Part shown: piece by piece, positions 4,376 to 60,062 of the stretch
How positions within the stretch are numbered: position 1 is the stretch's first letter
Layout: the number at the start of each line of letters is the position of its first letter
From: Macrostomum lignano
Lineage: Eukaryota
Length of the DNA stretch: 64,000 nt
Reading direction: 5' to 3'
Assembly: GCA_002269645.1 (NCBI GenBank)
Contig: NIVC01001468.1
Coordinates: 62,001 to 126,000 of the forward strand
Made by a program: the position numbers and the translations under genes
The notes under the pieces: model-generated
Seen by the model: the letters and a program-made list of their open reading frames with translations, nothing else
Database searches by the model: none
What the model was told of the DNA's origin: nothing

Positions 4376-4409
<34 letters not shown>

Positions 4410-4499
4410 TCTCTCCCCTCTTCTTCTCGCCTCTCTCCCTTCTCTTCTTCTCTCCCCCTCTCTCCCTTCTCTTCTTCTCCCCCCTTCTCTCCCCTCTCT

Positions 4500-4561
<62 letters not shown>

Positions 4562-4733
4562 TCTCTCCCCTCTCTTCTTCTCGCCTCTCTCCCTCTCTTC
4601 TTCTCGCCTCTCTTCCTTCTCTTCTTCTCTCCCCTCTCTTCTTCTCTCCCTCTTCTTCTCGCCTCTCTCCCTTCTCTTCTTCTCTCCCCCTCTCTCCCTT
4701 CTCTTCTTCTCCCCCCCCCTCTCTCCCCTCTCT

Positions 4734-4767
<34 letters not shown>

Positions 4768-5225
4768 TCTCTCCCTCTCTTCTTCTCGCCTCTCTCCCCT
4801 CTCTTCTTCTCGCCTCTCTTCCTTCTCTTCTTCTCTCCCCTCTCTTCTTCTCTCCCCTCTCTTCTTCTCGCCTCTCTCCCCTCTCTTCTTCTCGCCTCTC
4901 TTCCTTCTCTTCTTCTCTCCCCTCTCTTCTTCTCTCCCCTCTTCTTCTCGCCTCTCTCCCTTCTCTTCTTCTCTCCCCTCTCTTCTTCTCTCCCCTCTCT
5001 CTTCTCCCTTATCTTCTTCTTTCCCCTCTCCCTTCGTTTTTCTCTCCCCTCTGTCCCCTCTTTTATTTCTCCTCTCTTCTCCCCTCTCCCCTCTCTTTTC
5101 TCTCTCTTTTCCTCTCCCCTCTCTCCCTCTGCCCTCTTTCCCAACTCCTCTCCTCTTTTATCTTTTCTCTCATCCCATTCCCCGCGTCCCCTCTCTTCTC
5201 TCATCTTCTGTCTTCCATTCCCTTT
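3050..5225. repeat. About 2.2 kb almost pure pyrimidine (C/T) tract
   Basis: Units of tctcttcttctctcccc and variants; source of the spurious 797, 731 and 439 aa ORFs. Confidence 0.95.
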
Positions 5226-5643
5226 CCTTTGCACTCTCATCTGGCCCGCAGACAGGAGCTGAATTCCCTATCTGGCCCTTGAGGTAAAAAAGTTTGCAGA
5301 TAGTCGGTTTCCAATCCAGATGCTTTTTCATCTGGAGCTCCATGGCTCTCCCAGCTTGACCTGATTTGCATCGCTCAGGCAAAGGCTTGAAGGCGGCGGC
5401 AATTTTCCTTCCCTATCTGCTTTTCATTCCTTGATGGATAGGATAGAATTAATGTGGTATAGTCCTTTCCCATTCAACTGCGATGCTGCTTGTCTAAACA
5501 GCTTGCTGGAGTCTGGAAGGCTAGCTGGGGGGGGGGGGGGTAAGACAGGCAAAGTTCTTATAAACGAATCTCATTAACTTCGGCGCTTCTTTACCGCAGA
5601 TTATTTTTCTGCTACTTTTCCACCTCAACACGGCCATCTTTCA

Positions 5644-7956: not shown

Positions 7957-8053
<97 letters not shown>

Positions 8054-8508
8054 CAGCAGAGAGAAATGAGAAGAGATAAGAGAGAAAAGATAAAAGAAGA
8101 GAAAGGAAAGATGAGAGAGCAAAGACGAGAGAGAAAAGAGGTGCGGGAAGAGACGAGAGAAGAGGGGAGAGATGAGAGAGTAGAGGAGAGTTAAGAGAAG
8201 AGAGAAAAGAATAGAAAGGAGAATGAAGATAAGAGAGAAGAGGGGTGAGAGGAGAGAGGAGAGGGGGAGAGAGGAGAGAGAAAACGAAAAAGTAGAGAGG
8301 AGAGAGGAGAGGAGAGAGAAAAGAAGAGACAAGAGATGAGATAAGAGAGATGAAAGAGAAGAGAGATGAGGGAAGATACGAGAGAAGAGGGGAGAGAGGA
8401 GAGAGGAGAGAGGAGAGACGAGGGACGAGAGAGATGAGAGGAAACAAAGAGACGATAGAAATTTTAAAGGATCCAAGGGACGTAGGAGAGTCAGGGAGAG
8501 ACCAGAGT
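6701..8508. repeat. Purine-rich tract with a direct repeat (6701-7037 and 8272-8508) and (GA)n at about 7958-8050
   Basis: Both copies run from aggagagagaaaacgaaaaag to ggatccaagggacgtagg..accagagt. Confidence 0.9.
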
Positions 8509-8956
8509 TTGCCAATACATGTTTTAGAGTCAGACAGACATTGCCTGACATTCTGCGCAGCACCCCAGCCAACAATGTCTCAAACCCTAATTTTACACGA
8601 ATGTGCTCCATTTTATGTCTACCTCTATCCTACTAACTATTAACAAGTTTTTGTTTGTGTATGGCCTTAGATTTCAGAATACATGCAAAAGTAGTTCCGG
8701 GTATTGGAATTCCCGGGTTCAAAATCCGCGGGTTTCAACAGCTTGTTCATTTATATAGAGAGCATAGATCGGTTGGGTAGGACAAATTTGGGGGCTGTGC
8801 TGCCATTCGCAGCCATGAGGGCCAACCCTTAGGGCACAGAGAGTGTACATGCCTGATGATTAGAAAGTCAACGTACAGTGCCTGCGTACAGTTATTGAGT
8901 AGGCCAACCTGCAGCTTTACATCGCCCTGCGCCCCCCCCCCCAATTCCGCTTGCAG

Positions 8957-9111
8957 CAAGGGCGGCGAGCGTGGGCGCAACTTCAGGAACGGCAACTCGT
9001 CCTACTCGCGCCAGCCGCTCCAGGTGATGGTGGAGCCGGCCCTTAAGCAGCCTCTGATCGCCGCCCAGCATAACAACTCGACCAGCTTCTGCACTGGCAC
9101 GCTGCAGAGCA

Positions 9112-9142
<31 letters not shown>

Positions 9143-9435
9143 CGGTGGCGGCGGCCACGGACCGGCGTCTCTACTTCAACAACAACAGCAGCAACAGCAG
9201 CAGCAGCAGCTTCTGCAACACCAGCAACAGTTGCTTCTTCAGCAGCAGCAGCAACAACAGCAGCAACAGCAACAACAGATGCAAGCGATGGCGATGGGTC
9301 AGCAGTTCATGACAATGCCGCCAGGTCACTCTGGCACTCTGCCAACTTCGTCAATTGGATCTGGCAACAGCTCAGCTTATCATGCCGGCCCCACTGACCC
9401 TGTGGAACTGCGTCGGGTCAACTTCCCGACACCGG
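8957..9435 (+). CDS. Lar: LAR-type receptor PTP exon: juxtamembrane region with polyG/polyQ
   Basis: Acceptor ttgcag|C (phase 2, matches 1876); ends in the LAR-family motif PTDPVELRRVNFPTP; donor G|GTGAGT at 9436, phase 1. Confidence 0.88.
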
Positions 9436-9570
9436 GTGAGTCTGGCTGCTCTTTTATAAACTTACTATTTTTGTGAGTGTTGTACAGCCGCAGTCAGCAG
9501 GATTGTAACGCCGAGCAAGTCACTGAGACTGCATCGCCATGCACTGTATGCGTTCTAGAAATCGAAAGAA

Positions 9571-11552: not shown

Positions 11553-12120
11553 TGTCTGACTCTCTCTGACTCTCTCTGACTCTGACTCTCTCTGATTCTC
11601 TGACTCTCTGACTCTCTCTGACTCTCTCTGACTCTGACTCTCTCTGACTCTGACTCTCTCTGACTCTCTCTGACTCTCCGACTCTCTGACTCTCTCTGAC
11701 TCTCTCTGACTCTCTGACTCTCTCTGACTCTCTCTGACTCTCTCTGACTCTCTCTGACTCTCCGACTCTCTGACTCTCTCTGACTCTCTGACTCTCTCTG
11801 ACTCTCTCTGACTCTCTCTGACTCTCTCTGACTCTCCGACTCTCTGACTCTCTCTGCCTCTCTGACTCTCTCTGCCTCTCTCTGACTCTCTTTGAGCTTC
11901 TCTGACTCTCTCTGACTCTCCGACTCTCTGACTCTTTCTGACTCTCTGACTCTCTCTGACTCTCTCTGACTCTCTTTGAGTTTCTCTGACTCTCTCTGAT
12001 TCTCTGACTCTCTCTTATTCTTTCTGAAATTCTCTGCCTCTCTCTGCCTCTCTGACTCCTCCTCTGACTCTCTCTCTCTCTCTCTCTCCCTGACTCTACC
12101 CATCTCTCTCTGATTCTTCC
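11553..12120. repeat. (tc)n-tgac satellite, LAR intron, left block
   Basis: Tandem tctctgac units starting about 40 nt after the donor. Confidence 0.95.
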
Positions 12121-12884
12121 CCAACTCTTCTGACCCTTTATTTCTCCTTCTGACTCTCCGTAACTCTCCTAGTGCACTATAAACCTTCCCGCTGTCTTTC
12201 CGCTATTAGCTTTCTGCACTATTAGACCTAATCGGTGGGTTCATTGCGATTTTATCTAGTCAATAACGGCTACTATTGGCTAGTGATAGCGCATCCGGCA
12301 GTTGTCATGCGATCCAAGATTCTCCATTCTACACCTACCACTCGTAGATCCTTGATTTTACTCACCAATTAGAAAGCGATGATGACGCCTCTCTCTGGGG
12401 CCAGTTGCACTCAACTCGACAACAGCGGGATAATTAGTCAAGTGCGAGTCTCGCACAGGGGGGCACGGGCTGAAGAACCGTTGGATTAGAGTAGCCGAGG
12501 TGACACTGCCAGAATCGAGTGAGTAGGTGTGAGCAGGAGCTGAGTTAATCCCGGATTAGAGCAAGCTGAGTCGATACTCGATACATTGGAGACGCGCCTC
12601 GGGCCTCATCAGCTTGTAAAAGAAAGTAGAGACGCCAATTCAGTGTGAAATGCGAAAGACTAAAAAGCTTGTGTCAGATTTGCACCGGATCAGTCAGTGC
12701 GAGGGGGTGGGAGAAAGCTTTCTGGGGAAAGATCCTGAGGCCGGGGTTTCTTTCAAAGAAATCCCTTTGGGACTGAGCAGGCCCTAGAGAGTCGGAGCTC
12801 TGCACTTCTGTGCTTGCAGAATAAAATTTTGTTCGCACGCCAGGGTCTGCCTTTCTTGGCTCTTGCTTTGATCTGGGGCTGTTT

Positions 12885-13670
12885 ACTCTCTCTGACTCTC
12901 TCTGACACTCTGCCTCTGACTCTCTCTGATGCTCTCTGACTCTCTGACTCTCTGACTCTCTCTGACACTCTCTGACTCTCTCTGACACTCTGCCTCTGAC
13001 TCTCTCTGCCTCTCTCTGACTCTCTGACTCTCTGACTCTCTGACTCTCTCTGACACTCTCTGACTCTCTCTGACTCTCTCTGACACTCTGCCTCTGACTC
13101 TCTCTGCCTCTCTCTGACTCTCTGACTCTCTGACTCTCTGACTCTCTCTGACACTCTGCCTCTGACTCTCTCTGATGCTCTCTGACTCTCTCTGCCTCTC
13201 TCTGACTCTCTGACTCTCTGACTCTCTGACTCTCTCTGACTCTCTCTGACTCTCTCTGACTCTCTCTGACACTCTGCCTCTGACTCTCTCTGATGCTCTC
13301 TGACTCTCTCTGCCTCTCTCTGACTCTCTGACTCTCTGACTCTCTCTGACTCTCTCTGACCCTCTGTCTGACTCTCTGCCTCTGTGACCTTTTCTGACTC
13401 TTCTGCTTCTCCCTGCATCTCTGTACCTCTCTCTGACTCTCTCTGCCTCTCTGACTCTCTAACTCTCTCTGACCCTCTGTCTGACTCTCTGCCTCTGTGA
13501 CCTTTTCTGACTCTTCTGCTTCTCCCTGCATCTCTGTACCTCTCTCTGACTCTCTCTGCCTCTCTGACTCTCTAACTCTCTCTGATTCTCTCTCTGACTC
13601 TCTCTGCCTCTTTGACTTTCTGCTTCTTTGACTCTCTCTGCCTCTGTCTGACTCTCTCTCTCCCTCCCTG
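12885..13670. repeat. (tc)n-tgac satellite, right block
   Basis: Same unit family as the left block, separated by about 750 bp of unique DNA. Confidence 0.95.
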
Positions 13671-13781
13671 ACTTTTCTATCCCTCCGTCTGATTCTCCCC
13701 CATCTCATAATTCTGATTCTCCGCAACTCACCCGCTTCTCAAGCCCCATCACCCCTAACCACCTGCGCCCAACAACTGCAG

Positions 13782-14809
13782 GGCGCCACCGAGAAGCGCG
13801 AGATTCGACACTTCCAGTTCACGGCCTGGCCGGACCACGGCGTGCCCGAACACTGCGCCCCGCTGCTCATGTTCCTGCGCCGGGTGCGCGCCTCCAACCC
13901 GCCCGACGCCGGGCCAATTGTCGTCCACTGCAGCGCCGGCGTCGGCCGCACCGGCGCTTTCATCGTCATCGATGCTATGCTCGAACGGATGAAGCAGGAG
14001 AAGACGCTGGACGTCTACGGTCACGTGACCTGCCTGCGAGCGCAGCGGAACTACATGGTGCAGACTGAGGACCAGTACATCTTCATTCACGACTGCCTGG
14101 TGGAAGCGGTGACCTGCGGCAACACGGAGGTCCCGGCTCGAGCCCTGGCCAATCACGTGCACAAGCTGAGCCTGCTGGATGACCTGTCCGGAGTCAGCGG
14201 CCTGGAGCTGGAGTTCCGCAGCCTGGCCCAGATGAAGCCGCCAGCCTCGGCCAAGTTCACCAGCGCCAGCCTGCCAGCCAACAAGCTGAAGAACCGCCTG
14301 GTGAACATTTTGCCCTACGAGAACTGCCGTGTCTACCTGCAGCCGATACGCGGCGTCGAAGGCTCCGACTACATCAACGCCTCCTGGATCGACGGCTACA
14401 GGCAGCGGGCCTGCTACATCGCCACCCAAGGGCCGCTGCCGGACACCGCCGAGGACTTCTGGCGCATGCTGTGGGAGCACAACTCCACCATTGTGGTGAA
14501 CCTCACCAAACTGCGCGAGCAGGGCCGCGAGAAATGTCACCAGTATTGGCCTGGCGAGCGCTCGGCCCGCTACCAGTACTTTGTGGTTGACCCCATGGCA
14601 GAGTACAACATGCCCAGCTACATCCTGCGCGAGTTCAAGGTCACGGACGCCAGGGACGGCCAGTCCAGAACGGTGCGTCAGTTCCACTTCACCGAGTGGC
14701 CCGACCAGGGCGTGCCGAAATCTGGCGAAGGCTTCATCGAGTTTATCGGCCAGGTGCACAAAACCAAAGAGCAGTTTGGGCAGGACGGGCCGATCACCGT
14801 TCACTGCAG
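13782..14809 (+). CDS. Lar: LAR-type receptor PTP exon: end of D1 and most of D2
   Basis: Acceptor ctgcag|GGC; [27 protein letters not shown] (D1); [20 protein letters not shown] (D2); donor AG|GTGAGT at 14810, phase 2. Confidence 0.97.
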
Positions 14810-22676: not shown

Positions 22677-22737
22677 ATGGCTGCGAAGATATTTTGTATC
22701 GTATTATTTTTAGCCTTGAGCGATTTTTTACTTCGAG
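22677..22737 (+). CDS. Lachesin/IgLON-like protein exon 1 (signal peptide)
   Basis: aaaATG then MAAKIFCIVLFLALSDFLLR, donor G|GTGGGT in phase 1, which joins the phase-1 acceptor at 24130 to give ...LLRVSA/IRPAIVE. Confidence 0.7.
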
Positions 22738-23827
22738 GTGGGTGTTTTTTGTGTTTACTTTTCTATTTTTCATAATCATAGTTCATAATTGTTCAGAGAC
22801 TTCTCAGTTGTGGTTGTGGAACAGTTTTGAGAGGTTGAGCCAAAAAAGATATATTTAGTTCATTGGTATAGTCAAGGAATTAGCCTAGTTGATGCCAACA
22901 AAATTCTAAGAAAGCACCATCTTAATATAAAATGTGATTGAATTCATAAGCATAGGCATAGACATAGAAAAAGGTCAGGATGATTCTGTTTTCTATAGAA
23001 TTTTCCCACATAATAAGGATTTTTGATATAGACTCCACAAAAAACAGGATATCTGGTTATAATTTATATTTAGATGAACAATTTTTTTTCACCTATACGG
23101 TATATAGATAAGCCATCTTGTGGTTTAGACTTTAAAAATAATTTTGTGCAATCAATGAATCATCTTGACTATGAGCAATTATATTGTTGTTAAACATTTT
23201 TTCAAGTTTTAATTCTTTCATCTTGGATAATAGATTAAAATATGTGTAAATTAATTGCACTTATAATAATAACAAGTTGTTAGATTGCTAGTTTAGAATA
23301 AGATTAAAAGTACTAAACTATGATTTCAAAAGTGGCAAATTAAAGCAGGTTGGATAAAGTGAAGAAATATACTTAAATTTAGTATTACAATTGTAATATA
23401 TTGTATATATTAAAAGTGGGTTAATTCATTTATTACATAATCCATATACTCCTAGGCAAAAATATCATTCTAAGAACTCCAAAAAACTAGCTCGAGTGGG
23501 CCAGTAGTATCCTTTAGTCTCCACAATCAAACTTGCCACTGTTTAATTGAATTAAAAAATCGAAATGGATATGCCTATCATTTATGAAGATGGAACTATA
23601 TATATTGAAGTTTTTTAAAGCTAGATATATGAATTTCACCTTGGTTATTGATTAGATTAAATTGGATATGTGACTTTTTCATTAAACTTTGATAATCTAC
23701 TTACAAGTTAATAATAGGAAAATCTATGACAGTATATTATTAACTTTTTATTTTTTGGATATCTAGATAGAGATATTGCCTTATACACTATTATTTTAGT
23801 TTTTGTAGTTGGCAACTTCAATTTGAA

Positions 23828-24090
23828 GGAGTGTAGCCAAGTGGTCTAGCTACAGTCCAGTCACATTACTCATAGTTTGTGTGCCTTAAAATCTTGGCTT
23901 GGCTCTGCTTGTGCAATTAACACCCTTGAGGGCCAACCACCAAGGCACAGTGAAGTGTACATGCTTAAAGATAAATGAAGTTAGGGCCGCTGTATGCTCC
24001 TGTGTGAGTGTGTGCCTGTTCAGGGGAGTCATTAGAATGGACAGTAATGCCTCTCGCCAGTTGTGGGACAATATGGCTAAATGGTCCTTT
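23828..24090 (+). mobile_element. Diverged copy C of the SINE family in lachesin-like intron 1
   Basis: Shares cttgagggccaacc..aaggc.cagtgaagtgtacatgc..aaagttagggccgctgta..gtgtgagtgtgtgcctg..caggggagtc..gtaatgcctctcgcc with copies A and B. Confidence 0.8.
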
Positions 24091-24130
24091 CAATTAACTG
24101 GCTTCATCAACCACTCTCCACTATGCACAG

Positions 24131-24573
24131 TTTCTGCAATTCGGCCAGCAATCGTTGAGAACATAGTGACAGAGGTGCGGCCCATAGACAGCACGGCCAC
24201 CCTGAACTGCTCCGTGGCGCTGTTCAGCAACCCGCCCGAGCGAGTGCAGTGGTACAAACTCTTGCCCGGCCAAAGCGACAAGGCCATCAGCGCCGGCACG
24301 AAGATCACTGAGCAGAACCCGATCCTGCAGGGTGACATGCTGAAATATGAAGTCCGCAGCCGGCCTGGCCGAACCGTGTTCATCCCGGACATGGGCTACA
24401 CTGACGTCACCACCTTCACGCTGCTCATCCGCCGACTCACCAACCTGGACGCTGCCAATTACAAATGCCGGATTAATGTGCCCGGCTCGCCAGCTGACTC
24501 GCCCGAGGTTGTTGCCACGCTGATCGTGCCAAGGGAACCGTTTATTAACCCGGCCGAGGTCACCAACAATCAG
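24131..24573 (+). CDS. Lachesin/IgLON-like protein exon 2 (Ig1)
   Basis: Acceptor gcacag|; TATLNCSV..VQWYK..FTLLIRRL...DAANYKC Ig pattern; donor CAG|GTGCGC. Confidence 0.88.
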
Positions 24574-24799
24574 GTGCGCTGCAGTGTCGGTTGAAGCTTG
24601 TTCTAATTAGTGACCAGTGGCCATCATGTTCTGATTCAAAGCCATGAGGGCTGACGATTAGAAAGTCTGTGCAGCCTGTACACCCTGTGTGAGCGTGTGT
24701 ACAGTGTACAACAGTCTGCGTACATTATAATTAATGTGCAGAATTGCCGTATTACTAATACAATAAGCCGGCATTGTTCCCCAATACCCGCATTCGCAG

Positions 24800-25087
24800 G
24801 TGGTGGAGGAGGGCGCCAACGTGACGCTGAAGTGTAGCGCCACCTCGGAGCCGCCGGCGCACATCAGCTGGATCCGGGCCAACGGGCTGCCGCTGAACAT
24901 CCCCGGCCAGCCGCAGCGGGTCTACCAGAGCGAAGTGACCCTCATCAACGTCACCAAGTACGATCGGGGAGTCTATCGCTGCTTCGCCAACAACAATGTC
25001 GGCTACGGGGCGAAACACGACGTCCGGATCGATGTGAACTACGCGCCTAGCATCCGGGGCGCGCGATTGCACAATCTGTATCTGCAG
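24800..25087 (+). CDS. Lachesin/IgLON-like protein exon 3 (Ig2)
   Basis: Acceptor tcgcag|; VEEGANVTLKCSAT..ISWIRANG..DRGVYRCFANN.VG; donor CAG|GTGAGC. Confidence 0.9.
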
Positions 25088-25119
25088 GTGAGCACGGGTT
25101 CTGACTACAGCCGCTGGTG

Positions 25120-27385
25120 GCATACCCTCAGTGAGTCACCATCCCCATACCCTCAGCGAGTCACCCATCCCATACCATCAGTGAGTCACCAATCCCATAC
25201 CATCAGTGAGTCACCATCCCCATACCCTCAGCGAGTCACCATTCCATACCCTCAGTGAGTCACCATCCCCATACCCTCAGCGAATCACCATCCCATACCC
25301 TCAGTGAGTCACCCATCCCATACCATCAGTGAGTCACCAATCCCATACCATCAGTGAGTCACCATCCCCATACCCTCAGCGAGTCACCATCCCATACCCT
25401 CAGTGAGTCACCCATCCCATACCATCAGTGAGTCACCCATCCCATACCCTCAGTGAGTCACCCATCCCATACCATCAGTGAGTCACCCATCCCATACCCT
25501 CAGTGAGTCACCCATCCCATACCATCAGTGAGTCACCCATCCCATACCCTCAGTGAGTCACCCATCCCATACCATCAGTGAGTCACCAATCCCATATCCT
25601 CAGTGAGTCACCCATCCCATACCCTCAGTGAGTCACCATTCCATACCCTCAGTGAGTCACCATCCCCATACCCTCAGTGAGTCACCATTCCATACCCTCA
25701 GCGAGTCACCATTCCATACCCTCAGTGAGTCACCCATCCCATACCATCAGTGAGTCACCAATCCCATACCATCAGTGAGTCACCATCCCCATACCCTCAG
25801 CGAGTCACCATTCCATACCCTCAGTGAGTCACCATCCCCATACCCTCAGCGAATCACCATCCCATACCCTCAGTGAGTCACCCATCCCATACCATCAGTG
25901 AGTCACCAATCCCATACCATCAGTGAGTCACCATCCCCATACCCTCAGCGAGTCACCATCCCATACCCTCAGTGAGTCACCCATCCCATACCATCAGTGA
26001 GTCACCCATCCCATACCCTCAGTGAGTCACCCATCCCATACCATCAGTGAGTCACCCATCCCATACCCTCAGTGAGTCACCCATCCCATACCATCAGTGA
26101 GTCACCCATCCCATACCCTCAGTGAGTCACCCATCCCATACCATCAGTGAGTCACCAATCCCATATCCTCAGTGAGTCACCCATCCCATACCCTCAGTGA
26201 GTCACCATTCCATACCCTCAGTGAGTCACCATCCCCATACCCTCAGTGAGTCACCATCCCATACCCTCAGTGAGTCACCCATCCCATACCCTCAACGAGT
26301 CACCCATCCCATACCCTCAGTGAGTCACCATCCCCATACCCTCAGCGAGTCACCATCCCATACCCTCAGTGAGTCACCCATCCCATACCCTCAGCGAGTC
26401 ACCCATCCCCATACCCTCAGTGAGTCACCATCCCAAACCCTCAGTGAGTCACCATCCCAAACCCTCAGTGAGTCACCCATCCCATACCCTCAGCGAGTCA
26501 CCAATCCCATACCCTCAGTGAGTCACCATCCCATACCCTCAGTGAGTCACCATCCCATACCCTCAGTGAGTCACCCATCCCATACCCTCAGTGAGTCACC
26601 CATCCCATACCCTCAGCGAGTCACCAATCCCATACCCTCAGTGAGTCACCCATCCCATACCCTCAGTGAGTCACCAATCCCATACCCTCAGTGAGTCACC
26701 AATCCCATACCCTCAGTGAGTCACCCATCCCATACCCTCAGTGAGTCACCATCCCATACCCTCAGTGAGTCACCATCCCATACCCTCAGTGAGTCACCCA
26801 TCCCATACCCTCAGTGAGTCACCAATCCCATACCCTCAGTGAGTCACCCATCCCATACCCTCAGTGAGTCACCATCCCCATACCCTCAGCGAGTCACCAT
26901 CCCATACCCTCAGTGAGTCACCCATCCCATACCATCAGTGAGTCACCAATCCCATATCCTCAGTGAGTCACCCATCCCATACCCTCAGTGAGTCACCATT
27001 CCATACCCTCAGTGAGTCACCATCCCCATACCCTCAGTGAGTCACCATCCCATACCCTCAGTGAGTCAACATCCCATACCCTCAGTGAGTCACCATCCCA
27101 TACCCACCAGCGAATCACCAATCCCATACCCTCAGCGTGTCACCATCCCATACCCTCAGCGAATCACCAATCCCATACCCTCAGCGAGTCACCATCCCAT
27201 ACCCTCAGCGAATCACCAATCCCATACCCTCAGCGTGTCACCATCCCATACCCTCAGCGAATCACCAATCCCATACCCTCAGCGAGTCACCATCCCATAC
27301 CCTCAGCGAATCACCAATCCCATACCCTCAGTGAGTCACAATCCCATACCCTCAGTGAGTCACGATCCCATACCCCCAGTGAGTC
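25120..27385. repeat. 25-27 bp minisatellite (cccataccctcagtgagtcacc(c)at) filling lachesin-like intron 3
   Basis: About 2.3 kb; the cccatatcct variant recurs at 25591, 26160 and 26951, indicating block duplications. Confidence 0.97.
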
Positions 27386-27479
27386 ACCATCTTTACTTCG
27401 GATCCCATGAGCGTGCCGTCTATTCAACTTGAGATCCTGATGCCTGGTGCTAATCCAAGGTCGCCCCCTCTCACTTCAG

Positions 27480-27935
27480 GCCCCCGAGCGGAACTACGAG
27501 ATCACACTGGAATGCGTCTCAACCGGCTACCCCGACCCGGAGGTGACTTTCTACAGCGGCACGGTGATTCCAAGGCCAGATCAGCCGCTGCCGGATAGCC
27601 AGGTGATCAAGAACCAGTTCCCCTTCTCAGTTGAGCGCCTGCGCAGTCAAGGTGCAGCCGGCACTCACGTGTACGAATTCTTCTACGCTCTGCGCATTAA
27701 GAATGTGCGCGACACTCACCTGGGCAATTACACCTGCGTGGCTAAGAATAAATACGGTGTGGACGCTGCCGTACTGAAACTGGCTAATGAGGAGGTCTGC
27801 CAGGGTCCGTTGTGCTTCGGCACTAGTGTTGAACAGTCGGCTAATTCACCTGGCGCTGGGCACCGCTCTGCTGGTTCCTGTGCTGTTATTAGCGGCTTGG
27901 CAATTGCGGCTTTTATGATGCGACGCCTCCTGTGA
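27480..27935 (+). CDS. Lachesin/IgLON-like protein exon 4 (Ig3 + GPI-signal-like tail)
   Basis: Acceptor cacttcag|; ITLECVSTGYPDP..LRI..LGNYTCVAKNKYG; short hydrophobic C-terminus; spliced CDS is 1248 nt (415 aa). Confidence 0.88.
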   Translation, partial: APERNYEITLECVSTGYPDPEVTFYSGTVIPRPDQPLPDSQVIKNQFPFSVERLRSQGAAGTHVYEFFYALRIKNVRDTHLGNYTCVAKNKYGVDAAVLKLANEEVCQGPLCFGTSVEQSANSPGAGHRSAGSCAVISGLAIAAFMMRRLL

Positions 27936-31062: not shown

Positions 31063-32826
31063 TCAAAGCTCGTCAAAGCTGGAGTCGCTGCCGAACAGCT
31101 GGTCGAAAACCTCGCGAAGACCCTCTGTGCCGATCCGGTCGGTCATCTTCTGCACCTCCTCCTCGAAGGTGCTGCACTGGACGCCTAGCCGACCGAGTAT
31201 GCTGTCGAGCTTGTTGAGGTCGGGCCGGCTTCCGTTGAGCACAAACTGCTGCACGTTGAGTCCCAGCTCGGCCGCCTTGTACACCATCTGGCCCCTGGAG
31301 TGCTGCTGACGCAGGAAAGACACGAACACGAGTTTCGCGTCGAACACTTCTTGTCGGTAGCGCTCAAACAGGGGAAAAAAACGAGTTCCCTGGAAGTCGG
31401 TGTTCTCTTCCTCATCCGTGACTACGATAAAAGTGCGAACAATCTCCTTGCGCTCGTAGTACGGATACAGAGCTGCGGCATGAGCAGTGCAGCCTGATGC
31501 CTTTGTGCTGCGAGCCAGACTCAGGACCTCTTCGATGGTTCGAGGATTGGCCTCGGGGCTCCACGACTTGACGTTGAAGAAGATCAGGTCGCACTTGATG
31601 ATGGCCGACAGCAGAGACGAGATGATGGTGGCGGTGCGGATGGCGACATTCATCGAAGACGAGGCGTCGCCAATGACGACGACCGGAGACTCGAGGTTGA
31701 GAGTGGTCTCCTGCAGCTTGTGCTCCGCGACTGGGATGAGCATCGGGTAGAAGCTGGGCACGGGAGACATGCCAGAGAAGAGCAGCAAACGCTCCATCAG
31801 CTTGCCGTAGGTGAGCGTGACCTTTTCTCCGTTGCGCAGTCGCTCCTCGATGGCCGCATCGACCTCGGGACACTTGACGTCTTCGTACCACCAGATGCCG
31901 CGATCCACTCGGTCGTCGTTGCGCACAACTCGAGCTTTCGTTTGGTTGCTCATGTGCTCAAGGAAGCGACGAATTTCAGAAAAGGGCAGCGCTCGCTCGG
32001 CTAGGATCTCGTTCACATTCTCCGGGGTGATGATGGAGCACTGCTTGGCGAGCGTCCCATCCGGAGCTTCGGCACCGAAGCAGAACGGCAGGAACCAGGG
32101 CGCCGCAGGAAAGTCAATCGACGGGCTCAGGTGGCAAATGTCGGCAAGCTTCTTCCACGGATCCTTGGACATGTGCAGGGCAAAGTAGTCGAGCTCGGCG
32201 AGGGAGAAGGTGCGCACCCAGCGCTTCACGTGTCGGCAGAATGCTCCGCTAGCCGAGCCTTGAGCCGGTCGAATGGCCGACAGGTTGTCAATGTTGTACT
32301 TGACCTTGCTGACGAACTTCTTCTTTGCTCCTCCGGGCTGGCTCTGCGCCTTGGCGAGGCGCTTCTCCCACTCTCGAATCTTTCGTCCCGAGTCCAGCAT
32401 GGTAGCCGCCTTGAGCACCTCGGCTACACCGAAGCTGCCTCGGAGCTTGAGCAGTCCGTCAGCCAGCGCGGGGTCGTTGCGAGCCCAGGCGGCAGCGAGA
32501 GCACGGACTCGCGCGTTCTGATTGATCTCGACCCCGGATTTGGTGAGCACGGCGATGGCTGCCGCGTAGCGACTCCGATTGCTGGTCTGCGCCCTCGTGT
32601 GCTGCTCGAAGCTGGTCACGCCGAGGAAAAAGGCGCTGCTGTCGCCCGCAATGTCGAGCGCCTGGTCCGCCTTGTCCGCCGTCCACTCCTCGTCAGCGGC
32701 CGGCTGCTGCGGGCGGCCTCCGCCTCGACTGCCGCCTCGACTGCTGCCTCGACCGCCGCCTCGACCGCCACCTCGACCGCGACCCCTTCCGCCGCGCCCT
32801 CTGAGAGCTCCGCGTCCGCGGACCAT
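31063..32826 (-). CDS. Intronless 587-aa protein: N-terminal RGG box, helical region, C-terminal vWA domain with MIDAS (Ro60/TROVE-like layout, uncharacterised)
   Basis: Uninterrupted GC-rich ORF with the same codon style as the neighbouring genes; VVVIGDASSSM (DxSxS), SGCTA (T) and IVVTDEEEN (D) are spaced as in vWA folds; TATA promoter upstream. Confidence 0.88.
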   Translation of the reverse strand: MVRGRGALRGRGGRGRGRGGGRGGGRGSSRGGSRGGGRPQQPAADEEWTADKADQALDIAGDSSAFFLGVTSFEQHTRAQTSNRSRYAAAIAVLTKSGVEINQNARVRALAAAWARNDPALADGLLKLRGSFGVAEVLKAATMLDSGRKIREWEKRLAKAQSQPGGAKKKFVSKVKYNIDNLSAIRPAQGSASGAFCRHVKRWVRTFSLAELDYFALHMSKDPWKKLADICHLSPSIDFPAAPWFLPFCFGAEAPDGTLAKQCSIITPENVNEILAERALPFSEIRRFLEHMSNQTKARVVRNDDRVDRGIWWYEDVKCPEVDAAIEERLRNGEKVTLTYGKLMERLLLFSGMSPVPSFYPMLIPVAEHKLQETTLNLESPVVVIGDASSSMNVAIRTATIISSLLSAIIKCDLIFFNVKSWSPEANPRTIEEVLSLARSTKASGCTAHAAALYPYYERKEIVRTFIVVTDEEENTDFQGTRFFPLFERYRQEVFDAKLVFVSFLRQQHSRGQMVYKAAELGLNVQQFVLNGSRPDLNKLDSILGRLGVQCSTFEEEVQKMTDRIGTEGLREVFDQLFGSDSSFDEL

Positions 32827-33940: not shown

Positions 33941-34374
33941 TTCTGCCTAGACCCTCCAATGCTGCTCGGGTGACATGTCTTGGAAAAAAACTTCACCTTT
34001 AATTTCAGGTTTTATAAGAATTTCTAAGAACTGCTTTTTAATTTATCTGATACGCTCGTACTTTTACTTGATAAACCCTACTGCACTACTAACAGTAAGC
34101 AAAATCTGCTAGACAGTAAAATTGATTGGTGTTGTTATAAAAATTCGATCGGAGCCCCCAACGCGTTAGGTCCATAAAAGTCACTGTTGTAATGATATTT
34201 CCAGCTTACAGGTTGTAAGTCAATAAAGCGCTTTATTTTGAGTCATCCCTTATCAACATCCAAATCTTGCGGAAGCACGAGAATTGCCAGTTCTGGATTT
34301 TTGTTTCGCCACGCCATTTGCCCGCGGTATTCTTGCTGCTTGAATATCTACTAAAGATAGTTGTCAGCTAGCTT

Positions 34375-35148
34375 ATAGTCTGTAGCTGATATCCCTTCTG
34401 TACCTGGCATACCCTCTGTACCTGTTATACCCTCTGTAGCTGGCATCCCCTCTGTATCTGGAATCCTCTCTGTATCTGGCATCCCCTCTGTAGCTGGCAT
34501 CCTCTCTGTAGCTGGCATCCTCTCTGTAGCTGGCATCCCCTCTGTATCTGGAATCCTCTCTGTATCTGGCATCCCCTCTGTAGCTGGCATCCTCTCTGTA
34601 TCTGGCATCCCCTCTGTAGCTGGCATCCTCTCTGTAGCTGGCATCCCCTCTGTAGCTGGCATCCTCTCTGTAGCTGGCATCCCCTCTGTAGCTGGCATCC
34701 TCAATGTAGCTGGCATCCTCAATGTAGCTGGCATCCTCAATGTAGCTGGCATCCTCTCTGTAGTTGGCATCCTCAATGTAGCTGGCATCCTCAATGTAGC
34801 TGGCATCCTCTCTGTAGCTGGCATCCACTCTGTAGCTGGCATCCACTCTGTAGCTGGCATCCACTCTGTAGCTGGCATCCACTCTGTAGCTGGCATCCAC
34901 TCTGTAGCTGGCATCTCCTCTGTAGCTGGCACCCCTCTGTAGCTGGCATCCACTCTGTAGCTGGCATCTCCTCTGTAGCTGGCACCCCTCTGTAGCTGGC
35001 ATCCACTCTGTAGCCGGCATCCTCAATGTAGCTGGCATCCTCAATGTAGCTGGCATCCCCTCTGTAGCTGGCATCCACTCTGTAGCTGGCATCCCCTCTG
35101 TAGCTGGCATCCACTCTGTAGCTGGCATCCCCTCTGTAGCTGGCATCC
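34375..35148. repeat. 18-bp minisatellite (ctctgtagctggcatccc)
   Basis: About 43 units; the frame shifts within the array. Confidence 0.95.
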
Positions 35149-36459
35149 CTTTGATGATATTGAAAGCGGGCAAAAAACTTCCACGATCAAAGCATGCTGG
35201 TCGCGGGTGCAAGTGCACTCGGATTCATGAAGTTATGTTTGAATGGCGAATCTGAGAAGCCAACAAGGATTCAACTTTCTGACTTATTTTCAAATGTTTC
35301 CTCCAATCAGCAGTTCGAAAAAAATAAATATTTTTAGCTTGTTGAAGCAACGGAAATCGATGGCTTCCGGTCTACAATCGAGCGGACGCATTGCGAATGG
35401 AAATAAAGCAGGTTTATTTCGGTCCTGGCATTCTGTGAAACGAGTGGCACAAACCGGAAATTGGTAATTATCAATGTCCTAGTTCAATCCGAGTTGTGTT
35501 GAGGATAATGTATATCTAGCTGTCACGTCCTGCCCAGCAATACGTGTACCTGCTGCATGATCTGCTCCGATTATTAAAAGCAATTTTTATGGTTGATTTC
35601 CAATCGGCAGTTATGTTAACGACTTTTACCCGAAATAATTAATACTACTGCTATCGTTAACAAGTAGCGACTAAAGTATTTATTTGTTTTCTTATTTGTC
35701 TGACAGCAACCTAACTAACAGCAAAAGATTGACGAGTGGCTTGAAACCAGATTGGGCCACCTAGAAGCTTGGCACCCTGCCAATGGGACCTACCAAGCAG
35801 AGCAGGGGGTCAGCGGCATGAGGGCCAACCGCCAAGGCACTGCAGAGAGTGCACAATGCCTGACGATTAGAAAGTCAGGGCTGCTGTTCACCCTGTGTGA
35901 TCGTGCGTATGAGTGCTGTGCCTGCAGTTTTGGCGCTCTTGTATATTTAGGAGTCAGCGTTGGGTGTGGGATGGTATTGGAGCAGCCCCTCCTGCAATTA
36001 CTGTAATTGCTATCATTACTAAGTTTTGTAACTGATTAATGATTGTCAACACAAGAGGTTACAAAAATGGTCAGAAATGTTCTCCAGCCGCGAGAGGCCG
36101 GGAGTAGTGGAAAAATGATTAAAAACTATTAAAATTTCGGGGGTTGCTGGGAAGAGTAAAATCGCTTTGCACAACCAGAAAGCGGAAGTGCGGACCAGTT
36201 TCAGGTTTGGAATTTATCAGTGCAAGTGGCGTTTATCGCTCGGGAAATTCCGTTCTTTATTGGCTTTGCTAAGATTATAAAAAATGCAGCCGTGTTCTGT
36301 GACCAGGGAATATCGCCCCTCTTCACCGCTTAGATTCAGGGCTCAGAAAAATAACTGTTTTTTTCTGATAGCTCAAAGCAACAAGAGAAGCTACGACCTA
36401 TTTAGAAAGTATTCTTAGAGAAATCTTGGATCTTGAATTCTGAAAAAGTATTCACTCAA

Positions 36460-41269: not shown

Positions 41270-43435
41270 TAATAGAGAGACGGAGAGTAGATTAGAGAGA
41301 CGCTGAATAGATTAGAGAGACGCAGAGTAGATTAGAGAGATTCAGAGTAGATTTGAGAGATTCAGAGTAGATTTGAGAGACCGAGAGTAGATTAGACAGA
41401 CTCAGAGTAGATTAAAGAGATGGAGAGTAGATTAAAAAGATGGAGAGTAGAGTAGAGGGATGGAGAGTAGATTAGAGAGACCGAGAGTAGATGAGAGAGA
41501 CGGAGAGTAGATTAGAGAGATGGAGAGTAGATTAGAGAGACCGAGAGTAGATTAGAGAGATGGAGAGTAGATTAGAAAGATGGAGAGTAGATTAGAGAGA
41601 CGCAGAGTAGATGAGAGAGATTCAGAGTAGATTAGAGAGACTCAGAGTAGATTAGAGAGACCGAGAGTAGATTAGACAGACTCAGAGTAGATGAAAGAGA
41701 CCGAGAGTAGATTAAAGAGACCGAGAGTAGATGAGAGAGACGGAGAGTAGATTAGAGAGACCGAGAGTAGATTAGAGAGACGCAGAATAGATTAGAGAGA
41801 ATCAGAGTAGATTAGAGAGACGCAGAGTAGATTAGAGAGATTCAGAGTAGATTATAGAGATGGAGAGTAGATTAGAGAAATGGAGAGTAGATTAGAGAGA
41901 CCGAGAGTAGATTAGAGAGATGGAGAGTAGATTAGAAAGATGGAGAGTAGATTAGAGAGACGCAGAGTAGATGAGAGAGATTCAGAGTAGATTAGAGAGA
42001 CTCAGAGTAGATTAGAGAGACCGAGAGTAGATTAGACAGACTCAGAGTAGATTAAAGAGACCGAGAGTAGATTAAAGAGACCGAGAGTAGATGAGAGAGA
42101 CGGAGAGTAGATTAGAGAGATGGAGAGTAGATTAGAAAGATGGAGAGTAGATTAGAGAGACGCAGAGTAGATTAGAGAGACCGAGAGTAGATTAGAGAGA
42201 CCGAGAGTAGATTAGAGAGATGGAGAGTAGATTAGAAAGATGGAGAGTAGATTAGAGAGACGCAGAGTAGATGAGACAGATTCAGAGTAGATTAGAGAGA
42301 CCGAGAGTAGATTAGACAGACTCAGAGTAGATGAAAGAGACCGAGAGTAGATTAAAGAGACCGAGAGTAGATTGAAAAGATGGAGAGTAGATTAGAGAGA
42401 CTCAGAGTAGATTAGAGAGACGCAGAGTAGATGAGAGAGATTCAGAGTAGATTAGAGAGACCGAGAGTAGATTAGAGAGACCGAGAGTAGATGAAATAGA
42501 CCGAGAGTAGATTAAAGGGACCGAGAGTAGATGAGAGAGACGGAGAGTAGATTAGAGAGACCGAGAGTAGATTAAAGAGACCGTGAGTAGATTAAAGAGA
42601 CCGAGAGTAGATGAGAGAGACCGAGAGTAGATTAGAGAGACCGAGAGTAGATTAGAGAGACCGAGAGTAGATTAGACAGACTCAGAGTAGATGAAAGAGA
42701 CCGAGAGTAGATTAGACAGACTCAGAGTAGATGAAAGAGACCGAGAGTAGATGAGAGAGACGGAGAGTAGATTAAAGAGACCTAGAGTAGATGAGAGAGA
42801 CGGTGAGTAGATTAAAGAAACCTAGAGTAGATGAGAGAGACGGAGAATAGATTAGAGAGACCGAGAGTAGATTAAAGAGACCGAGAGTAGATTAAAGAGA
42901 CCGAGAGTAGATGATAGAGACGGAGAGTAGATTAGAGAGACCGAGAGTAGATTAGAGAGACCGAGAGTAGATTAGAGAGACCGAGAGTAGATTAGACAGA
43001 CTCAGAGTAGATGAAAGAGACCGAGAGTAGATGAGAGAGACGGAGAGTAGATTAAAGAGACCTAGAGTAGATGAGAGAGACGGAGAGTAGATTAGAGAGA
43101 CCGAGAGTAGATTAAAGAGACCGAGAGTAGATTAAAGAGACCGAGAGTAGATGAGAGAGACGGAGAGTAGATTAGAGAGACCGAGAGTAGATTAGAGAGA
43201 CCGAGAGTAGATTAGAGAGACCGAGAGTAGATTAGACAGACTCAGAGTAGATGAAAGAGACCGAGAGTAGATGAGAGAGACGGAGAGTAGATTAAAGAGA
43301 CCTAGAGTAGATGAGAGAGACGGAGAGTAGATTAGAGAGACCGAGAGTAGATTAAAGAGACCGAGAGTAGATTAAAGAGACCGAGAGTAGATTAAAGAGA
43401 CCGAGAGTAGATTAGAGAGACGGAGAGTAGATGAA
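41270..43435. repeat. 20-bp minisatellite (gagagtagattagagagacc), about 2.2 kb
   Basis: Strict 20-bp phase; lies in intron 1 of the disordered-protein gene. Confidence 0.97.
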
Positions 43436-54879: not shown

Positions 54880-55091
54880 CTGGTAGACAGCGCAAGGGGG
54901 AAACAATTTGTGGATTTAAAATTGTGTCAGTGGCAAAGCAGAGCTGAGCACAGGTAAGATGAAAGATACCGGAAGAAATCAAAACTGGAGAGATTGACGC
55001 ACGAGAGAGTAAGAAACAAAGCATAAGGGAATAGAGGGGGAAGAGACAGCGAAAAGGGGAAGAGAGATATGGGTAAGGGAGGAGTCAGGAA

Positions 55092-56042
55092 ATGGGAGAG
55101 AGACGGGGAAAGGGAAGAGGGACGGGGAAAGGGAAGAGGGACGGGGAAAGGGAAGAGGGACGGGGAAAGGGAAGAGAGACGGGGAAAGGGAAGAGAGACG
55201 GGGAAATGGGAGAGAGACGGGGAAAGGGAAGAGAGAGACGGGGAAAGGGAAGAGAGACGGGAAATGGGAGAGAGACGGGGAAAGGAAAGAGAGACGGGGA
55301 AAGGAAAGAGAGACGGGGAAAGGGAAGAGAGACGGGGAAAGGGAAGAGAGAGACGGGGAAAGGGAAGAGAGACGGGGAAAGAGAAGAGAGAGACGGGGAA
55401 AGGGAAGAGAGAGACGGGGAAAGGGAAGAGAGAGACGGGGAAAGGGAAGAGAGAGACGGGGAAAGGGATGAGAGACGGGGAAAGGGATGAGAGACGGGGA
55501 AAGGGATGAGAGACGGGGAAAGGGATGAGAGACGGGGAAAGGGATGAGAGACGGGGAAAGGGATGAGAGACGGGGAAGGGATGAGAGACGGGGAAAGGGA
55601 TGAGAGACGGGGAAAGGGATGAGAGACGGGGAAAGGGATGAGAGACGGGGAAAGGGATGAGAGACGGGGAAAGGGATGAGAGACGGGGAAAGGGATGAGA
55701 GACGGGGAAAGGGAAGAGAGACGGGGAAAGGGAAGAGAGACGGGGAAAGGGATGAGAGACGGGGAAAGGGATGAGAGACGGGGAAAGGGAAGAGACGGGG
55801 AAAGGGAAGAGAGACGGGGAAAGGGAAGAGAGAGACGGGGAAAGGGAAGAGAGACGGGGAAAGGGAAGAGAGACGGGGAAAGGGAAGAGAGACGGGGAAA
55901 GGGAAGAGAGACGGGGAAAGGGATGAGAGACGGGGAAAGGGATGAGAGACGGGGAAAGGGATGAGAGACGGGGAAAGGGAAGAGAGACGGGGAAAGGGAA
56001 GAGAGACGGGGAAAGGGATGAGAGACGGGGAAAGGGAAGAGA
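55092..56042. repeat. 19/21-bp minisatellite (gagacggggaaagggaaga), NO66 intron 2
   Basis: Tandem GGGG-AAA-GGG units. Confidence 0.96.
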
Positions 56043-56095
56043 GGCCTGTAACGCAAGAGCCCTGTATGGTTTAGCAAAAAAGTACATAAAAATAC

Positions 56096-56410
56096 CGCTA
56101 GACTCCCGCGGCAGCCGCTCGTTTGGCGACCTGGGCGCGTACACTCGCCAGTGCTTGCGCCCTTCGAGCTGCATAACGAAGGCTTCAATGTCGTCCCAAT
56201 GCGGCGCGAACCCCTGCGTACCGGGCGGAGTCAGGTAGACATTGGCGCCAACAAAAGACCCGAACAGTTCGTGCAAAATGCTCAGCTTTTGATAAACGCG
56301 ATCGTGAAACACCTGCGGACAGAGGAGGCGCAGCGAACAGCCCGACTGGTAGAACTGCCAGGTCTGGCTGACCAGTGCGCGGCCCTCCGGGTTGTGCGTC
56401 TCGCGCTTGC
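56096..56410 (-). CDS. RIOX1: NO66 exon 2 (JmjC HxD)
   Basis: [54 protein letters not shown]; phase 1 at both ends. Confidence 0.95.
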
Positions 56411-58296: not shown

Positions 58297-60062
58297 TGTG
58301 ATAGCACTGCTATTCCTCTCTGATAGCACTGCTATTCCCCTGTGATAGCACTGGCTATTCCTCTCTGATAGCACTGATATTCCCCTGTCATAGCACTGGC
58401 TATTCCTCTCTGATAGCACTGCTATTCCCCTGTGATAGCACTGCTATTCCCCTGTCATAGCACTGGCTATTCCCCTGTGATAGCACTGGCTATTCCTCTC
58501 TGATAGCACTGCTATTCCCCTGTGATAGCACTGCTATTCCCCTGTCATAGCACTGGCTATTCCCCTGTGATAGCACTGCTATTTCCCTGTGATAGCACTG
58601 CTATTCCCCTGTGATAGCACTGCTATATTCCTCTCTGATAGCACTGCTATTCCCCTGTGATAGCACTGATATTCCCCTGTCATAGCACTGGCTATTCCCC
58701 TGTGATAGCACTGCTATTTCCCTGTGATAGCACTGGCTATTCCCCTGTGATAGCACTGCTATATTCCTCTCTGATAGCACTGCTATTCCCCTGTGATAGC
58801 ACTGCTATATTCCTCTCTGATAGCACTGCTATATTCCTCTCTGATAGCACTGCTATATTCCTCTCTGATAGCACTGCTATTCCCCTGTGATAGCACTGCT
58901 ATATTCCTCTCTGATAGCACTGCTATATTCCTCTCTGATAGCACTGCTATTTCCCTGTGATAGCACTGCTATATTCCTCTCTGATAGCACTGCTATTTCC
59001 CTGTGATAGCACTGATATTCCCCCGTGATAGCACTGGCTATTCCCCTGTGATAACACTGCTATTCCCCTGTGATAGCACTGGCTATTCCCCTGTGATAGC
59101 ACTGATATTCCCCCGTGATAGCACTGTCTATTCCCCTGTGATAACACTGCTATTCCCCTGTCATAGCACTGGCTATTCCCCTGTGATAGCACTGCTATTC
59201 CCCGTGATGGCACTGTATTCCCCAGTGATAGCACTGCTATTCCCCCGTGATAGCACTGCTATTCCTCCGTGATAGCACTGGCTATTCCCCGTGATGGCAC
59301 TGTATTCCCCAGTGATAGCACTGCTATTCCCCCGTGATAGTACTGCTATTCCCCCGTGATAGCACTGGCTATTCCCCTGTGATAGCACTGCTATTCCACT
59401 GTGATAGCACTGGCTATTCCCCAGTGATAGCACTGCTATTTCCCTGTGATAGCACTGATATTCCCCCGTGATAGCACTGGCTATTCCCCAGTGATAGCAC
59501 TGCTATTTCCCTGTGATAGCACTGATATTCCCCCGTGATAGCACTGGCTATTCCCCTGTGATAGCACTGCTATTCCCCGTGATGGCACTGTATTCCCCAG
59601 AGATAGCACTGCTATTCCCCCGTGATAGCACTGCTATTCCCCCGTGATAGCACTGGCTATTCCCCTGTGATAGCACTGCTATTTCCCTGTGATAGCACTG
59701 CTATTCCCCTGTGATAGCACTGCTATTCCCCCGTGATAGCACTGGCTATTTCCCTGTGATAGCACTGCTATTCCCCGTGATGGCACTGTATTCCCCAGAG
59801 ATAGCACTGCTATTCCCCCGTGATAGCACTGGCTATTTCCCTGTGATAGCACTGCTATTCCCCTGTGATAGCACTGCTATTCCCCCGTGATAGCACTGGC
59901 TATTTCCCTGTGATAGCACTGCTATTCCCCGTGATGGCACTGTATTCCCCAGAGATAGCACTGCTATTCCCCCGTGATAGCACTGGCTATTCCCCTGTGA
60001 TAGCACTGCTATTCCCCCGTGATAGCACTGGCTATTCCCCTGTGATAGCACTGCTATTCCTC
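58297..60062. repeat. 22-24 bp minisatellite (gatagcactgctattcccctgt), NO66 intron 1
   Basis: About 1.75 kb; the basic unit contains the palindrome ATAGCA-C-TGCTAT. Confidence 0.96.

Follow-up and report, generated by a model that had tools for sequence, protein, structure and literature searches.

A single-exon gene on the reverse strand of Macrostomum lignano contig NIVC01001468.1 (assembly GCA_002269645.1; positions 62,001 to 126,000, a 64,000-nucleotide stretch referred to below as the window) encodes a protein that combines an arginine- and glycine-rich RG/RGG tract, an all-helical domain and one of the von Willebrand factor A (vWA) type with a complete MIDAS, or metal ion-dependent adhesion site (Table 1). 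The open reading frame (ORF) is uninterrupted and collinear throughout with full-length orthologues, and it belongs to a large unnamed eukaryotic and giant-virus protein family with members in invertebrates, in amoebae and other protists, and in giant viruses. A first-pass annotation of the window, made from its letters alone, had proposed a divergent, uncharacterised family resembling Ro60, in which a helical TROVE ring is paired with a MIDAS-bearing vWA domain, and had considered a retroposed or horizontal origin. The analysis supports the divergent Ro60-like family, lends weak support to the TROVE toroid and speaks against the horizontal origin.

Structure prediction for the full-length protein (AlphaFold2 with a 30-sequence alignment; mean predicted local distance difference test score (pLDDT) 83.6, predicted template modelling score (pTM) 0.76) revealed a disordered N-terminus, with pLDDT <50 over residues 1-53. 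Residues 1-40 contain 11 RG and 5 RGG motifs and, in all, 12 arginines and 19 glycines, and the tract has an isoelectric point (pI) of 12, bearing out the RG/RGG tail recognised in the first pass. Like RGG-box RNA-binding proteins, the flatworm protein thus carries clustered RGG/RG repeats in a disordered terminus, a feature conserved in the animal clade; unlike in those proteins, however, the tract supplements a large folded core and is confined to animals. The adjoining domain (pI 9.2) is helical in the model, as had been read from the letters, but its supposed richness in W and F was modest, at 7 W and 16 F among 322 residues; its N-terminal half (residues 54-186) includes a 29-residue helix and a long helical hairpin. 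The MIDAS residues were read from the sequence exactly where they had been placed (DASSS at 31668-31654, T at 31488, D at 31416). The flatworm protein ends 52 residues after the vWA domain, with helices at 537-586 at the end where protist members bear a U-box or RING, and it has no NACHT or WD40 region of the TEP1 type.

Table 1. Features of the gene and its product (positions in the window; residues of the 587-aa protein)
Feature	Position	Strand	Remarks
Coding sequence, RGG / helical / vWA protein	31063..32826	-	Single exon, 587 aa plus stop; from the ORF list, collinear with full-length orthologues
RG/RGG tract, residues 3-38	32713..32820	-	Predicted disordered together with the linker up to residue 53
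Basic all-alpha-helical domain, residues 54-375	31702..32667	-	Candidate TROVE-like solenoid; helices at 65-373 in the model
Segment, residues ~187-294	31945..32268	-	Collinear with the TROVE profile region holding Ro60 K170-H187 (hhalign)
Codon of H232	32131..32133	-	Family-invariant; aligned to the TROVE 'HPKP' histidine, Ro60 H187
vWA domain, Ro60 type, residues 376-535	31222..31701	-	Alpha/beta fold at 382-531 in the model, plus profile matches
MIDAS D387-A-S389-S-S391	31654..31668	-	Invariant in all family alignments; aligned to DVSGS of TROVE proteins
MIDAS T447	31486..31488	-	Falls on the GGT threonine, which is invariant among the aligned TROVE proteins
MIDAS D471	31414..31416	-	Inside near-invariant VTDEEEN; aligned to TDEQ of TROVE proteins
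Acidic C-terminal helical tail, residues 536-587	31066..31221	-	pI 4.1; opens with conserved RPDLxKLD, D536 invariant
Possible TATA box TATATAAAA	32937..32945	-	~115 nt 5' of the ATG; putative, from reading the sequence

An identical protein is encoded by two contigs of the assembly, NIVC01001468.1 and its homeologue NIVC01002990.1; the M. lignano assembly Mlig_3_7 represents a neopolyploid flatworm genome. Between these contigs the coding sequence changes at 4 of 1764 positions, each a synonymous third-codon site, whereas the flanks have diverged by 2.7% upstream and by ~8% downstream, indicating purifying selection on a working gene. The M. lignano gene is therefore real and under purifying selection, and pseudogene or relic status was rejected on the synonymous-only divergence. 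On the homeologous contig, the gene and ~4.4 kb around it are kept at 97.8% identity; farther out, similarity persists as shorter pieces, 92-99% identical, and one piece of NIVC01002990.1 (~12120-14666 in the numbering of the stretch compared) has no counterpart in the window. Such broken similarity fits a neopolyploid genome.

The lack of introns, noted in the first pass, was confirmed by the uninterrupted 587-aa ORF and by comparison with orthologues from abalone (~7 coding exons) and amphioxus (~11), which indicates that the intronless state is derived. Since both homeologues are intronless, the introns were lost before the M. lignano genome duplication. An intronless gene with multi-exon orthologues, lying in a repeat-rich neighbourhood, could also be read as a recent retrocopy, as a gene of horizontal origin or as a relic without function. 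This reading is very improbable given the age of the intron loss, the ORF intact in both homeologues between flanks ~10 times more divergent, and the retention of the RGG tail, the MIDAS and all family invariants; moreover, the 360 nt 3' of the stop codon showed no poly(A) tract, and the nearest homologues come from other animals rather than from protists or viruses. Retroposition as such may account for the intron loss; no hallmark of it was seen. The flatworm protein is 46-51% identical to RGG-type members from molluscs, echinoderms, amphioxus, a hemichordate, an annelid, a nemertean and rotifers, 35-44% identical to protist (amoebozoan) members and 31-32% identical to viral copies. This ranking points to vertical descent and disfavours horizontal origin, which was rejected on this ground.

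Searched as a single sequence, the flatworm protein gave only low-complexity RGG matches in Pfam, NCBIfam and a phmmer search against the PDB, including weak ones to the RGG stretches of ribosomal uS5, of MRE11 and of the FoP domain. When 1.84 billion cluster representatives (clusters at 50% identity) were searched with a family profile, 1260 family clusters had E<=1e-3, of which 829 reached E<=1e-10 and 397 reached E<=1e-30, with taxonomy known for a minority of the members. Neither a published description nor a Pfam model of the family was found in the literature and Pfam, although Burroughs & Aravind (2016) could mention it. UniRef automatic names read 'TROVE domain-containing' for seven members and 'VWFA domain-containing' for one. 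No vertebrate, arthropod, nematode, cnidarian or sponge member was present among the named matches listed. A bacterial origin of the metagenome homologues was rejected, as each is a rotifer-like gene cut short by an intron, a transcript from a protist or a gene of a giant virus. In a 60-sequence alignment of members 28-51% identical to the query, the MIDAS residues D387, S389, S391, T447 and D471 are invariant, as are D145, R148, L212, W224, H232 and F245 of the helical domain and also M392, F417, E474, Y490 and D536. Three architectures were identified, i.e., RGG plus core in animals, core plus U-box/RING in protists and core only in giant viruses. The RGG tract was found in 89 of 120 close animal homologues versus 8 of 147 distant representatives, so that the RGG tail, rightly taken for an added module in the first pass, is a clade-wide addition of animals. 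Given this recurrence and the MIDAS invariance, neither feature arose by chance.

In Haliotis cracherodii, the orthologue has a head-to-head neighbour on the reverse strand (1-3939 of the locus), which is a second family member of 565 aa with 51-72% identity in the individual exons, and H. rufescens carries two family members on one contig, which points to local duplication as the source of the gastropod paralogues. In bdelloid rotifers, gene models join the core to the TATA-binding protein domain TBP (PF00352; three models) or to methyltransferase domains (one model); these are probably merged gene models, but could be real fusions, and they were left out of the functional evidence. In addition, two very long representatives (1963 aa and 1905 aa) match the family profile in 3-4 separate stretches and may contain several cores, perhaps in tandem.

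The link to Ro60 is solid as regards the vWA domain and the architecture as a whole. The family shares with Ro60/TROVE2 and Rsr (PDB 1YVP, 1YVR, 2I91, 2NVO, 9KOP, 9L5Y and 9NFA) a helical domain of ~310-320 aa followed by a vWA domain of ~190 aa with a MIDAS. The 12 best PDB fold matches of the full-length model were all Ro60, Rsr or phage Ro60 (508-565 columns, E 2e-9 to 2.7e-6), with generic vWA domains appearing from E 3e-4 on. Identity to the Ro60 structures over the fold alignments was 12-15%, only slightly lower than the 16.6-17.7% mutual identity of accepted Ro60 homologues (PMC12135203). Together with the lack of Pfam, NCBIfam and PDB-sequence matches for the core, this agrees with the earlier view that the protein is not a canonical Ro60 and represents a divergent, uncharacterised family, whose nearest known relatives are Ro60, Rsr and other TROVE-vWA proteins.

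Profile comparisons gave the same picture. A TROVE profile was built from the phiLo phage Ro60 (MH673673, phiLo_26) and 90 homologues, in a 30-sequence and then an 85-sequence version; phiLo Ro60 itself matches Pfam TROVE (1.7e-6), VWA_2 and vWA_Ro60, and the profile matches human and Xenopus Ro60 and Deinococcus Rsr at ~1e-50. Hhalign aligned the family with this profile at a probability of 98.2% and E 4.2e-14 over 275 collinear columns (flatworm residues 187-502), whereas against a single Ro60 sequence the vWA domain alone was aligned (E 0.065). The vWA domain, compared by hhalign with the TROVE-family vWA as the one vWA family covered, gave E 3.7e-14 (3.7e-12 with larger alignments), and the hhalign P-values reported here are pairwise and exclude secondary-structure scoring. 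The complete DxSxS...T...D MIDAS is collinear between the two families, with D387, S389, S391, T447 and D471 aligned to the likewise invariant D322, S324, S326, T391 and D416 of the TROVE alignment. Furthermore, PF25045 (vWA_Ro60) was the best Pfam model of the family consensus (E 1.4e-3, short of the cut-off) and matched two members at up to 2.8e-6, and phrog_850, the phage Ro60 family, was the best PHROG for the flatworm protein (E 0.034), a viral copy (0.002) and the consensus (1.9e-4), with phiLo Ro60 matching it at 5e-38. Some members also match the generic VWA or VWA_4 models at 1e-11 to 1e-12.

The relationship of the helical domain to TROVE is suggestive at the level of sequence profiles. 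Helical domain against helical domain, hhalign returned P 1.4e-3 (score 31.6) versus P 0.02-0.47 for reversed and cross-domain controls, and with larger alignments (291 family and 85 TROVE sequences) P 8.6e-4 (score 33.0), or 4.4e-4 for the C-terminal half, versus 0.14-0.59 for the controls, whose scores were 11-15. The aligned helical segment holds the TROVE motif L-x-H-P-K-P, the histidine of which is H187 on the human RO60 chain, and the family-invariant H232 aligns to this H187 in an hhalign alignment of modest confidence. The Ro60 H187S mutant loses Y RNA binding (PMC11277228, review). In addition, the family helical domains are basic (median pI 9.0, net charge +7), like true TROVE helical domains (pI 9.5, +8), and both families split their charge between a basic helical domain and an acidic vWA domain (pI 9.0 and 5.2, respectively, compared with 9.5 and 6.0 in true Ro60 proteins).

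Several observations, however, weigh against a TROVE identity of this domain and against an RNA-directed function. The TM-scores of the full-length model to Ro60 are low (0.34-0.42 on the query, root-mean-square deviation 10-13 A), and, within the helical domain, residues 54-186 (the N-terminal half) are unrelated to TROVE in sequence (P 0.11). Pfam TROVE (PF05731) had no match at E<=10 in the flatworm protein and none in sets of 30, 10 and 48 members or in the consensus, and family profiles of 30 and 60 members matched no PDB chain in hmmsearch. Modelled alone, the helical domain was predicted with high pLDDT (91.3) but found no significant PDB fold, the best matches being solenoids resembling pentatricopeptide and tetratricopeptide repeats (PPR/TPR; E ~0.1); Rsr 2nvo ranked ninth (E 0.33, TM-score on the query 0.31), with the highest TM-score and probability in that list. 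K170 and R174 of Ro60 fall on Y214 and the M219 region and have no conserved counterparts in the family, again at modest alignment confidence. An Rfam scan of the window revealed no Y RNA or other known non-coding RNA; bacterial rsr loci have a Y-RNA-like non-coding RNA as a neighbour. Finally, the RING and U-box fusions described below are equally compatible with a purely protein-directed function. Since the helical domain alone had no significant fold match, a TROVE toroid is not claimed for it: of the toroid proposed in the first pass for residues 60-375, the profile signal of the C-terminal half stands (P 4e-4 to 1.4e-3), whereas a significant fold match was not obtained, a mixed outcome of the check suggested there.

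The most informative clue to function, absent from the first-pass annotation, is the fusion of the core to U-box, RING and ubiquitin-binding domains in protists together with the core-only copies in giant viruses. A core followed by a C-terminal U-box or RING was identified in Acanthamoeba castellanii Neff, Balamuthia, Pelomyxa, Stereomyxa, Filamoeba, Percolomonas and unnamed protist transcripts. Among 48 long distant members, zf-C3HC4_3 was found in 14 and a U-box in 2, in addition to UBA, UBA_7, CUE, DMA and MLLE domains; the U-box of the Acanthamoeba and Balamuthia members reached E ~1e-21, and that of Acanthamoeba lies at residues 645-713. No U-box or RING was detected by Pfam in the flatworm protein or in the scanned animal members. 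Two amoebozoan or related members showed a weak CUE/DMA (UBA-like) signal at the N-terminus (residues 22-43 and 19-41), the end where animals bear the RGG tract.

Taken together, the family protein is read here as a Ro60-like RNA- or ribonucleoprotein (RNP)-binding adaptor, with a probability of roughly 0.55. The basic helical domain, a possible TROVE homologue that may close into a ring, would bind structured or aberrant RNA, including on the surface equivalent to the Ro60 Y-RNA region around H187 (H232 in the flatworm protein), and the disordered RGG tail of animals would contribute further RNA affinity of a non-specific kind. A partner protein would be held through one of its acidic residues, docked at the invariant MIDAS. 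As protists fuse the same core to U-box/RING and ubiquitin-binding domains, the module probably served ancestrally to ubiquitylate the bound target; the animal form would then have shed its ligase domain and presumably relies on effectors recruited in trans.

The same fusions could equally belong to a protein-only adaptor of the ubiquitin system, in which a generic alpha-solenoid accompanies a MIDAS that captures an acidic substrate peptide, as in integrin I-domains or MDN1. The protist members would then be E3 ligases in their own right and the animal form a substrate receptor or a regulator that has no ligase domain, with the RGG tract serving localisation, arginine methylation or condensate targeting instead of specific recognition of RNA, and the likeness to Ro60 reflecting shared vWA descent alone. 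The recurrence of U-box/RING and UBA/CUE fusions, an invariant MIDAS, the site at which the best-studied vWA proteins bind a protein ligand, the lack of any Pfam TROVE match or significant TROVE structure match for the helical domain alone, and fold matches that include the vWA domains of Rpn10, the BRCA1-A complex, INTS13/14 and MDN1 are all consistent with it. Although it is the main rival, we consider it unlikely, because Ro60 ranks ahead of all other vWA proteins by about five orders of magnitude in alignments spanning the helical part, the helical domain by itself gives a collinear hhalign signal that reproducibly exceeds the controls, with H232 on H187, the helical domain is basic like TROVE, and the RGG tail of animals and the MLLE domain of one member point to RNA/RNP biology.

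Other proteins that pair a vWA domain with these modules resemble the family in part. Plant RGLG proteins combine a copine-type vWA domain with a C3HC4 RING E3 ligase domain and have no 320-aa helical domain. The protist members that end in a zf-C3HC4_3 RING after a MIDAS-bearing vWA domain parallel this arrangement, but they contain the 320-aa helical domain, no Copine or other vWA Pfam model scored above threshold, and the flatworm protein has no RING. DUF2828 (PF11443) proteins of plants, fungi, phages and giant viruses also join a helical and a vWA domain, and giant-virus models of this group were matched by fold at E 1e-4 (TM 0.16-0.41), compared with 1e-7 for TROVE phage proteins and 1e-31 for the Indivirus member of the family; however, no Pfam DUF2828 match was found in the flatworm protein, any scanned member or the consensus. 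As to Ro60 and Rsr themselves, the family differs from them in lacking a Pfam TROVE match, in an N-terminal helical half unrelated in sequence, in the non-conserved K170/R174 positions, in low TM-scores, and in its extra modules, which are the RGG and C-terminal helical tails of animals or the U-box/RING of protists.

The core-only members include Indivirus ILV1 A0A1V0SE27, which matches the flatworm model at TM 0.77-0.83 with 31% identity (E 1e-31). Moreover, four IMG/VR giant-virus contigs, two of them of ~0.5 Mb, encode core-only members of 497-580 aa in which DxSxSM and VTDEEEN are intact. These contigs are AT-rich (GC 26-41%), one of the matches lying at 8001-9548. The closest relatives of the giant-virus copies are unnamed core-only representatives of 500-590 aa (41-70% identity), which suggests that a sizeable metagenomic share of the family is viral.

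Such viral copies raise the question of a conflict or immunity module, in which the protist U-box/RING forms would sense viral or aberrant RNA or RNP and trigger ubiquitylation, the viral core-only copies would act as decoys or dominant negatives, and the animal RGG form would be a derived factor of innate immunity or transposon control; this overlaps with the Ro60-like adaptor and differs from it in biological role. The MIDAS-intact copies of Indivirus ILV1 and the four IMG/VR contigs, the many unnamed core-only representatives clustering with them, the presence of the U-box form in hosts of such viruses (Acanthamoeba and relatives), and the patchy distribution in animals, with paralogues in abalone and rotifers, would agree with this role. 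So would the example of TEP1, a STAND protein (signal transduction ATPase with numerous domains) of the NACHT-WD40 kind that has TROVE-vWA at its N-terminus and has lately been discussed with a TIR-like effector. Nevertheless, the family is conserved far more strongly than befits a gene in an arms race (animal and amoebozoan members are 41-51% identical, and many residues are invariant) and PADLOC defence models gave no meaningful match, making this role rather improbable. In TEP1 and Tetrahymena p80, TROVE-vWA forms the sensor end of a larger effector protein, paralleling the protist core with its U-box/RING; unlike TEP1, no scanned member has NACHT, TeTIR or WD40, and the effector of the family is an E3 ligase domain or is absent.

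A wider evolutionary version of the Ro60-like adaptor is tentative and on balance doubtful. It would make the family a third, ancient and hitherto overlooked TROVE-vWA branch, beside Ro60 and TEP1, spread across Amorphea, other protists and giant viruses, with an RNA/RNP-sensing E3 ligase as ancestor, the ligase swapped for RGG in animals and the viral copies maybe serving as decoys. The pairing of Ro60 with Ro52/TRIM21 has long been debated, and the core joined to a U-box or RING would be its covalent counterpart in such a scenario.

The remainder of the window is saturated with minisatellites between 1988 and 61340 (42 rows in Tandem Repeats Finder), including arrays of 25 bp x 92, 20 bp x 108 and 22 bp x 79 and a 2-kb TC-rich array; loci include 25121-27391 (25 bp x 92), 41273-43432, 58297-60068 and 3054-5127. 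These minisatellites account for strong GC/AT-skew blocks and for long low-complexity 'ORFs' (2894-5287 and 3045-5240). An 18-bp x 43 array lies at 34379-35149, ~1.5 kb upstream of the gene and inside the 2.7%-divergent flank, and the ORF that it produces (34373-35218) gave spurious 'LED repeat' and 'Plasmodium HRP' Pfam matches. A neighbouring gene at ~22677-27935 on the forward strand (by coordinate conversion) encodes a 415-aa immunoglobulin-domain protein over 5.2 kb and spans the 25-bp x 92 array; for this gene, the only neighbour covered, the repeat-filled introns described in the first pass are thus supported. In addition, an ORF at 528-1880 (forward strand) and another at 54927-56312 (reverse strand) match fibronectin type III (E 9e-19) and JmjC_2 (E 1e-16), respectively, and are probably large exons of neighbouring genes.

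To our knowledge, no eukaryotic TROVE-vWA protein has been characterised besides Ro60 and TEP1. What the MIDAS does in Ro60 is still unclear (PMC12135203). As such, a sister-like family is informative through its invariant MIDAS, its protist fusions to U-box/RING and ubiquitin-binding domains and its capture by giant viruses, and what is rated as new here is proteins of the TROVE-vWA kind with new accessory modules and a new phyletic pattern. The absence of the family from the named vertebrate, arthropod and nematode matches listed suggests that it may have escaped study for this reason; M. lignano, with RNA interference and transgenesis, and A. castellanii Neff offer tractable systems for it. 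Even if the helical domain should prove not to be TROVE-like, a new and widespread vWA-MIDAS family of E3 ligases or adaptors would stand. The family also offers a directly testable hypothesis for TROVE-vWA-type modules in general, namely that recognition of RNA or RNP may be coupled to ubiquitylation downstream of ligand binding.

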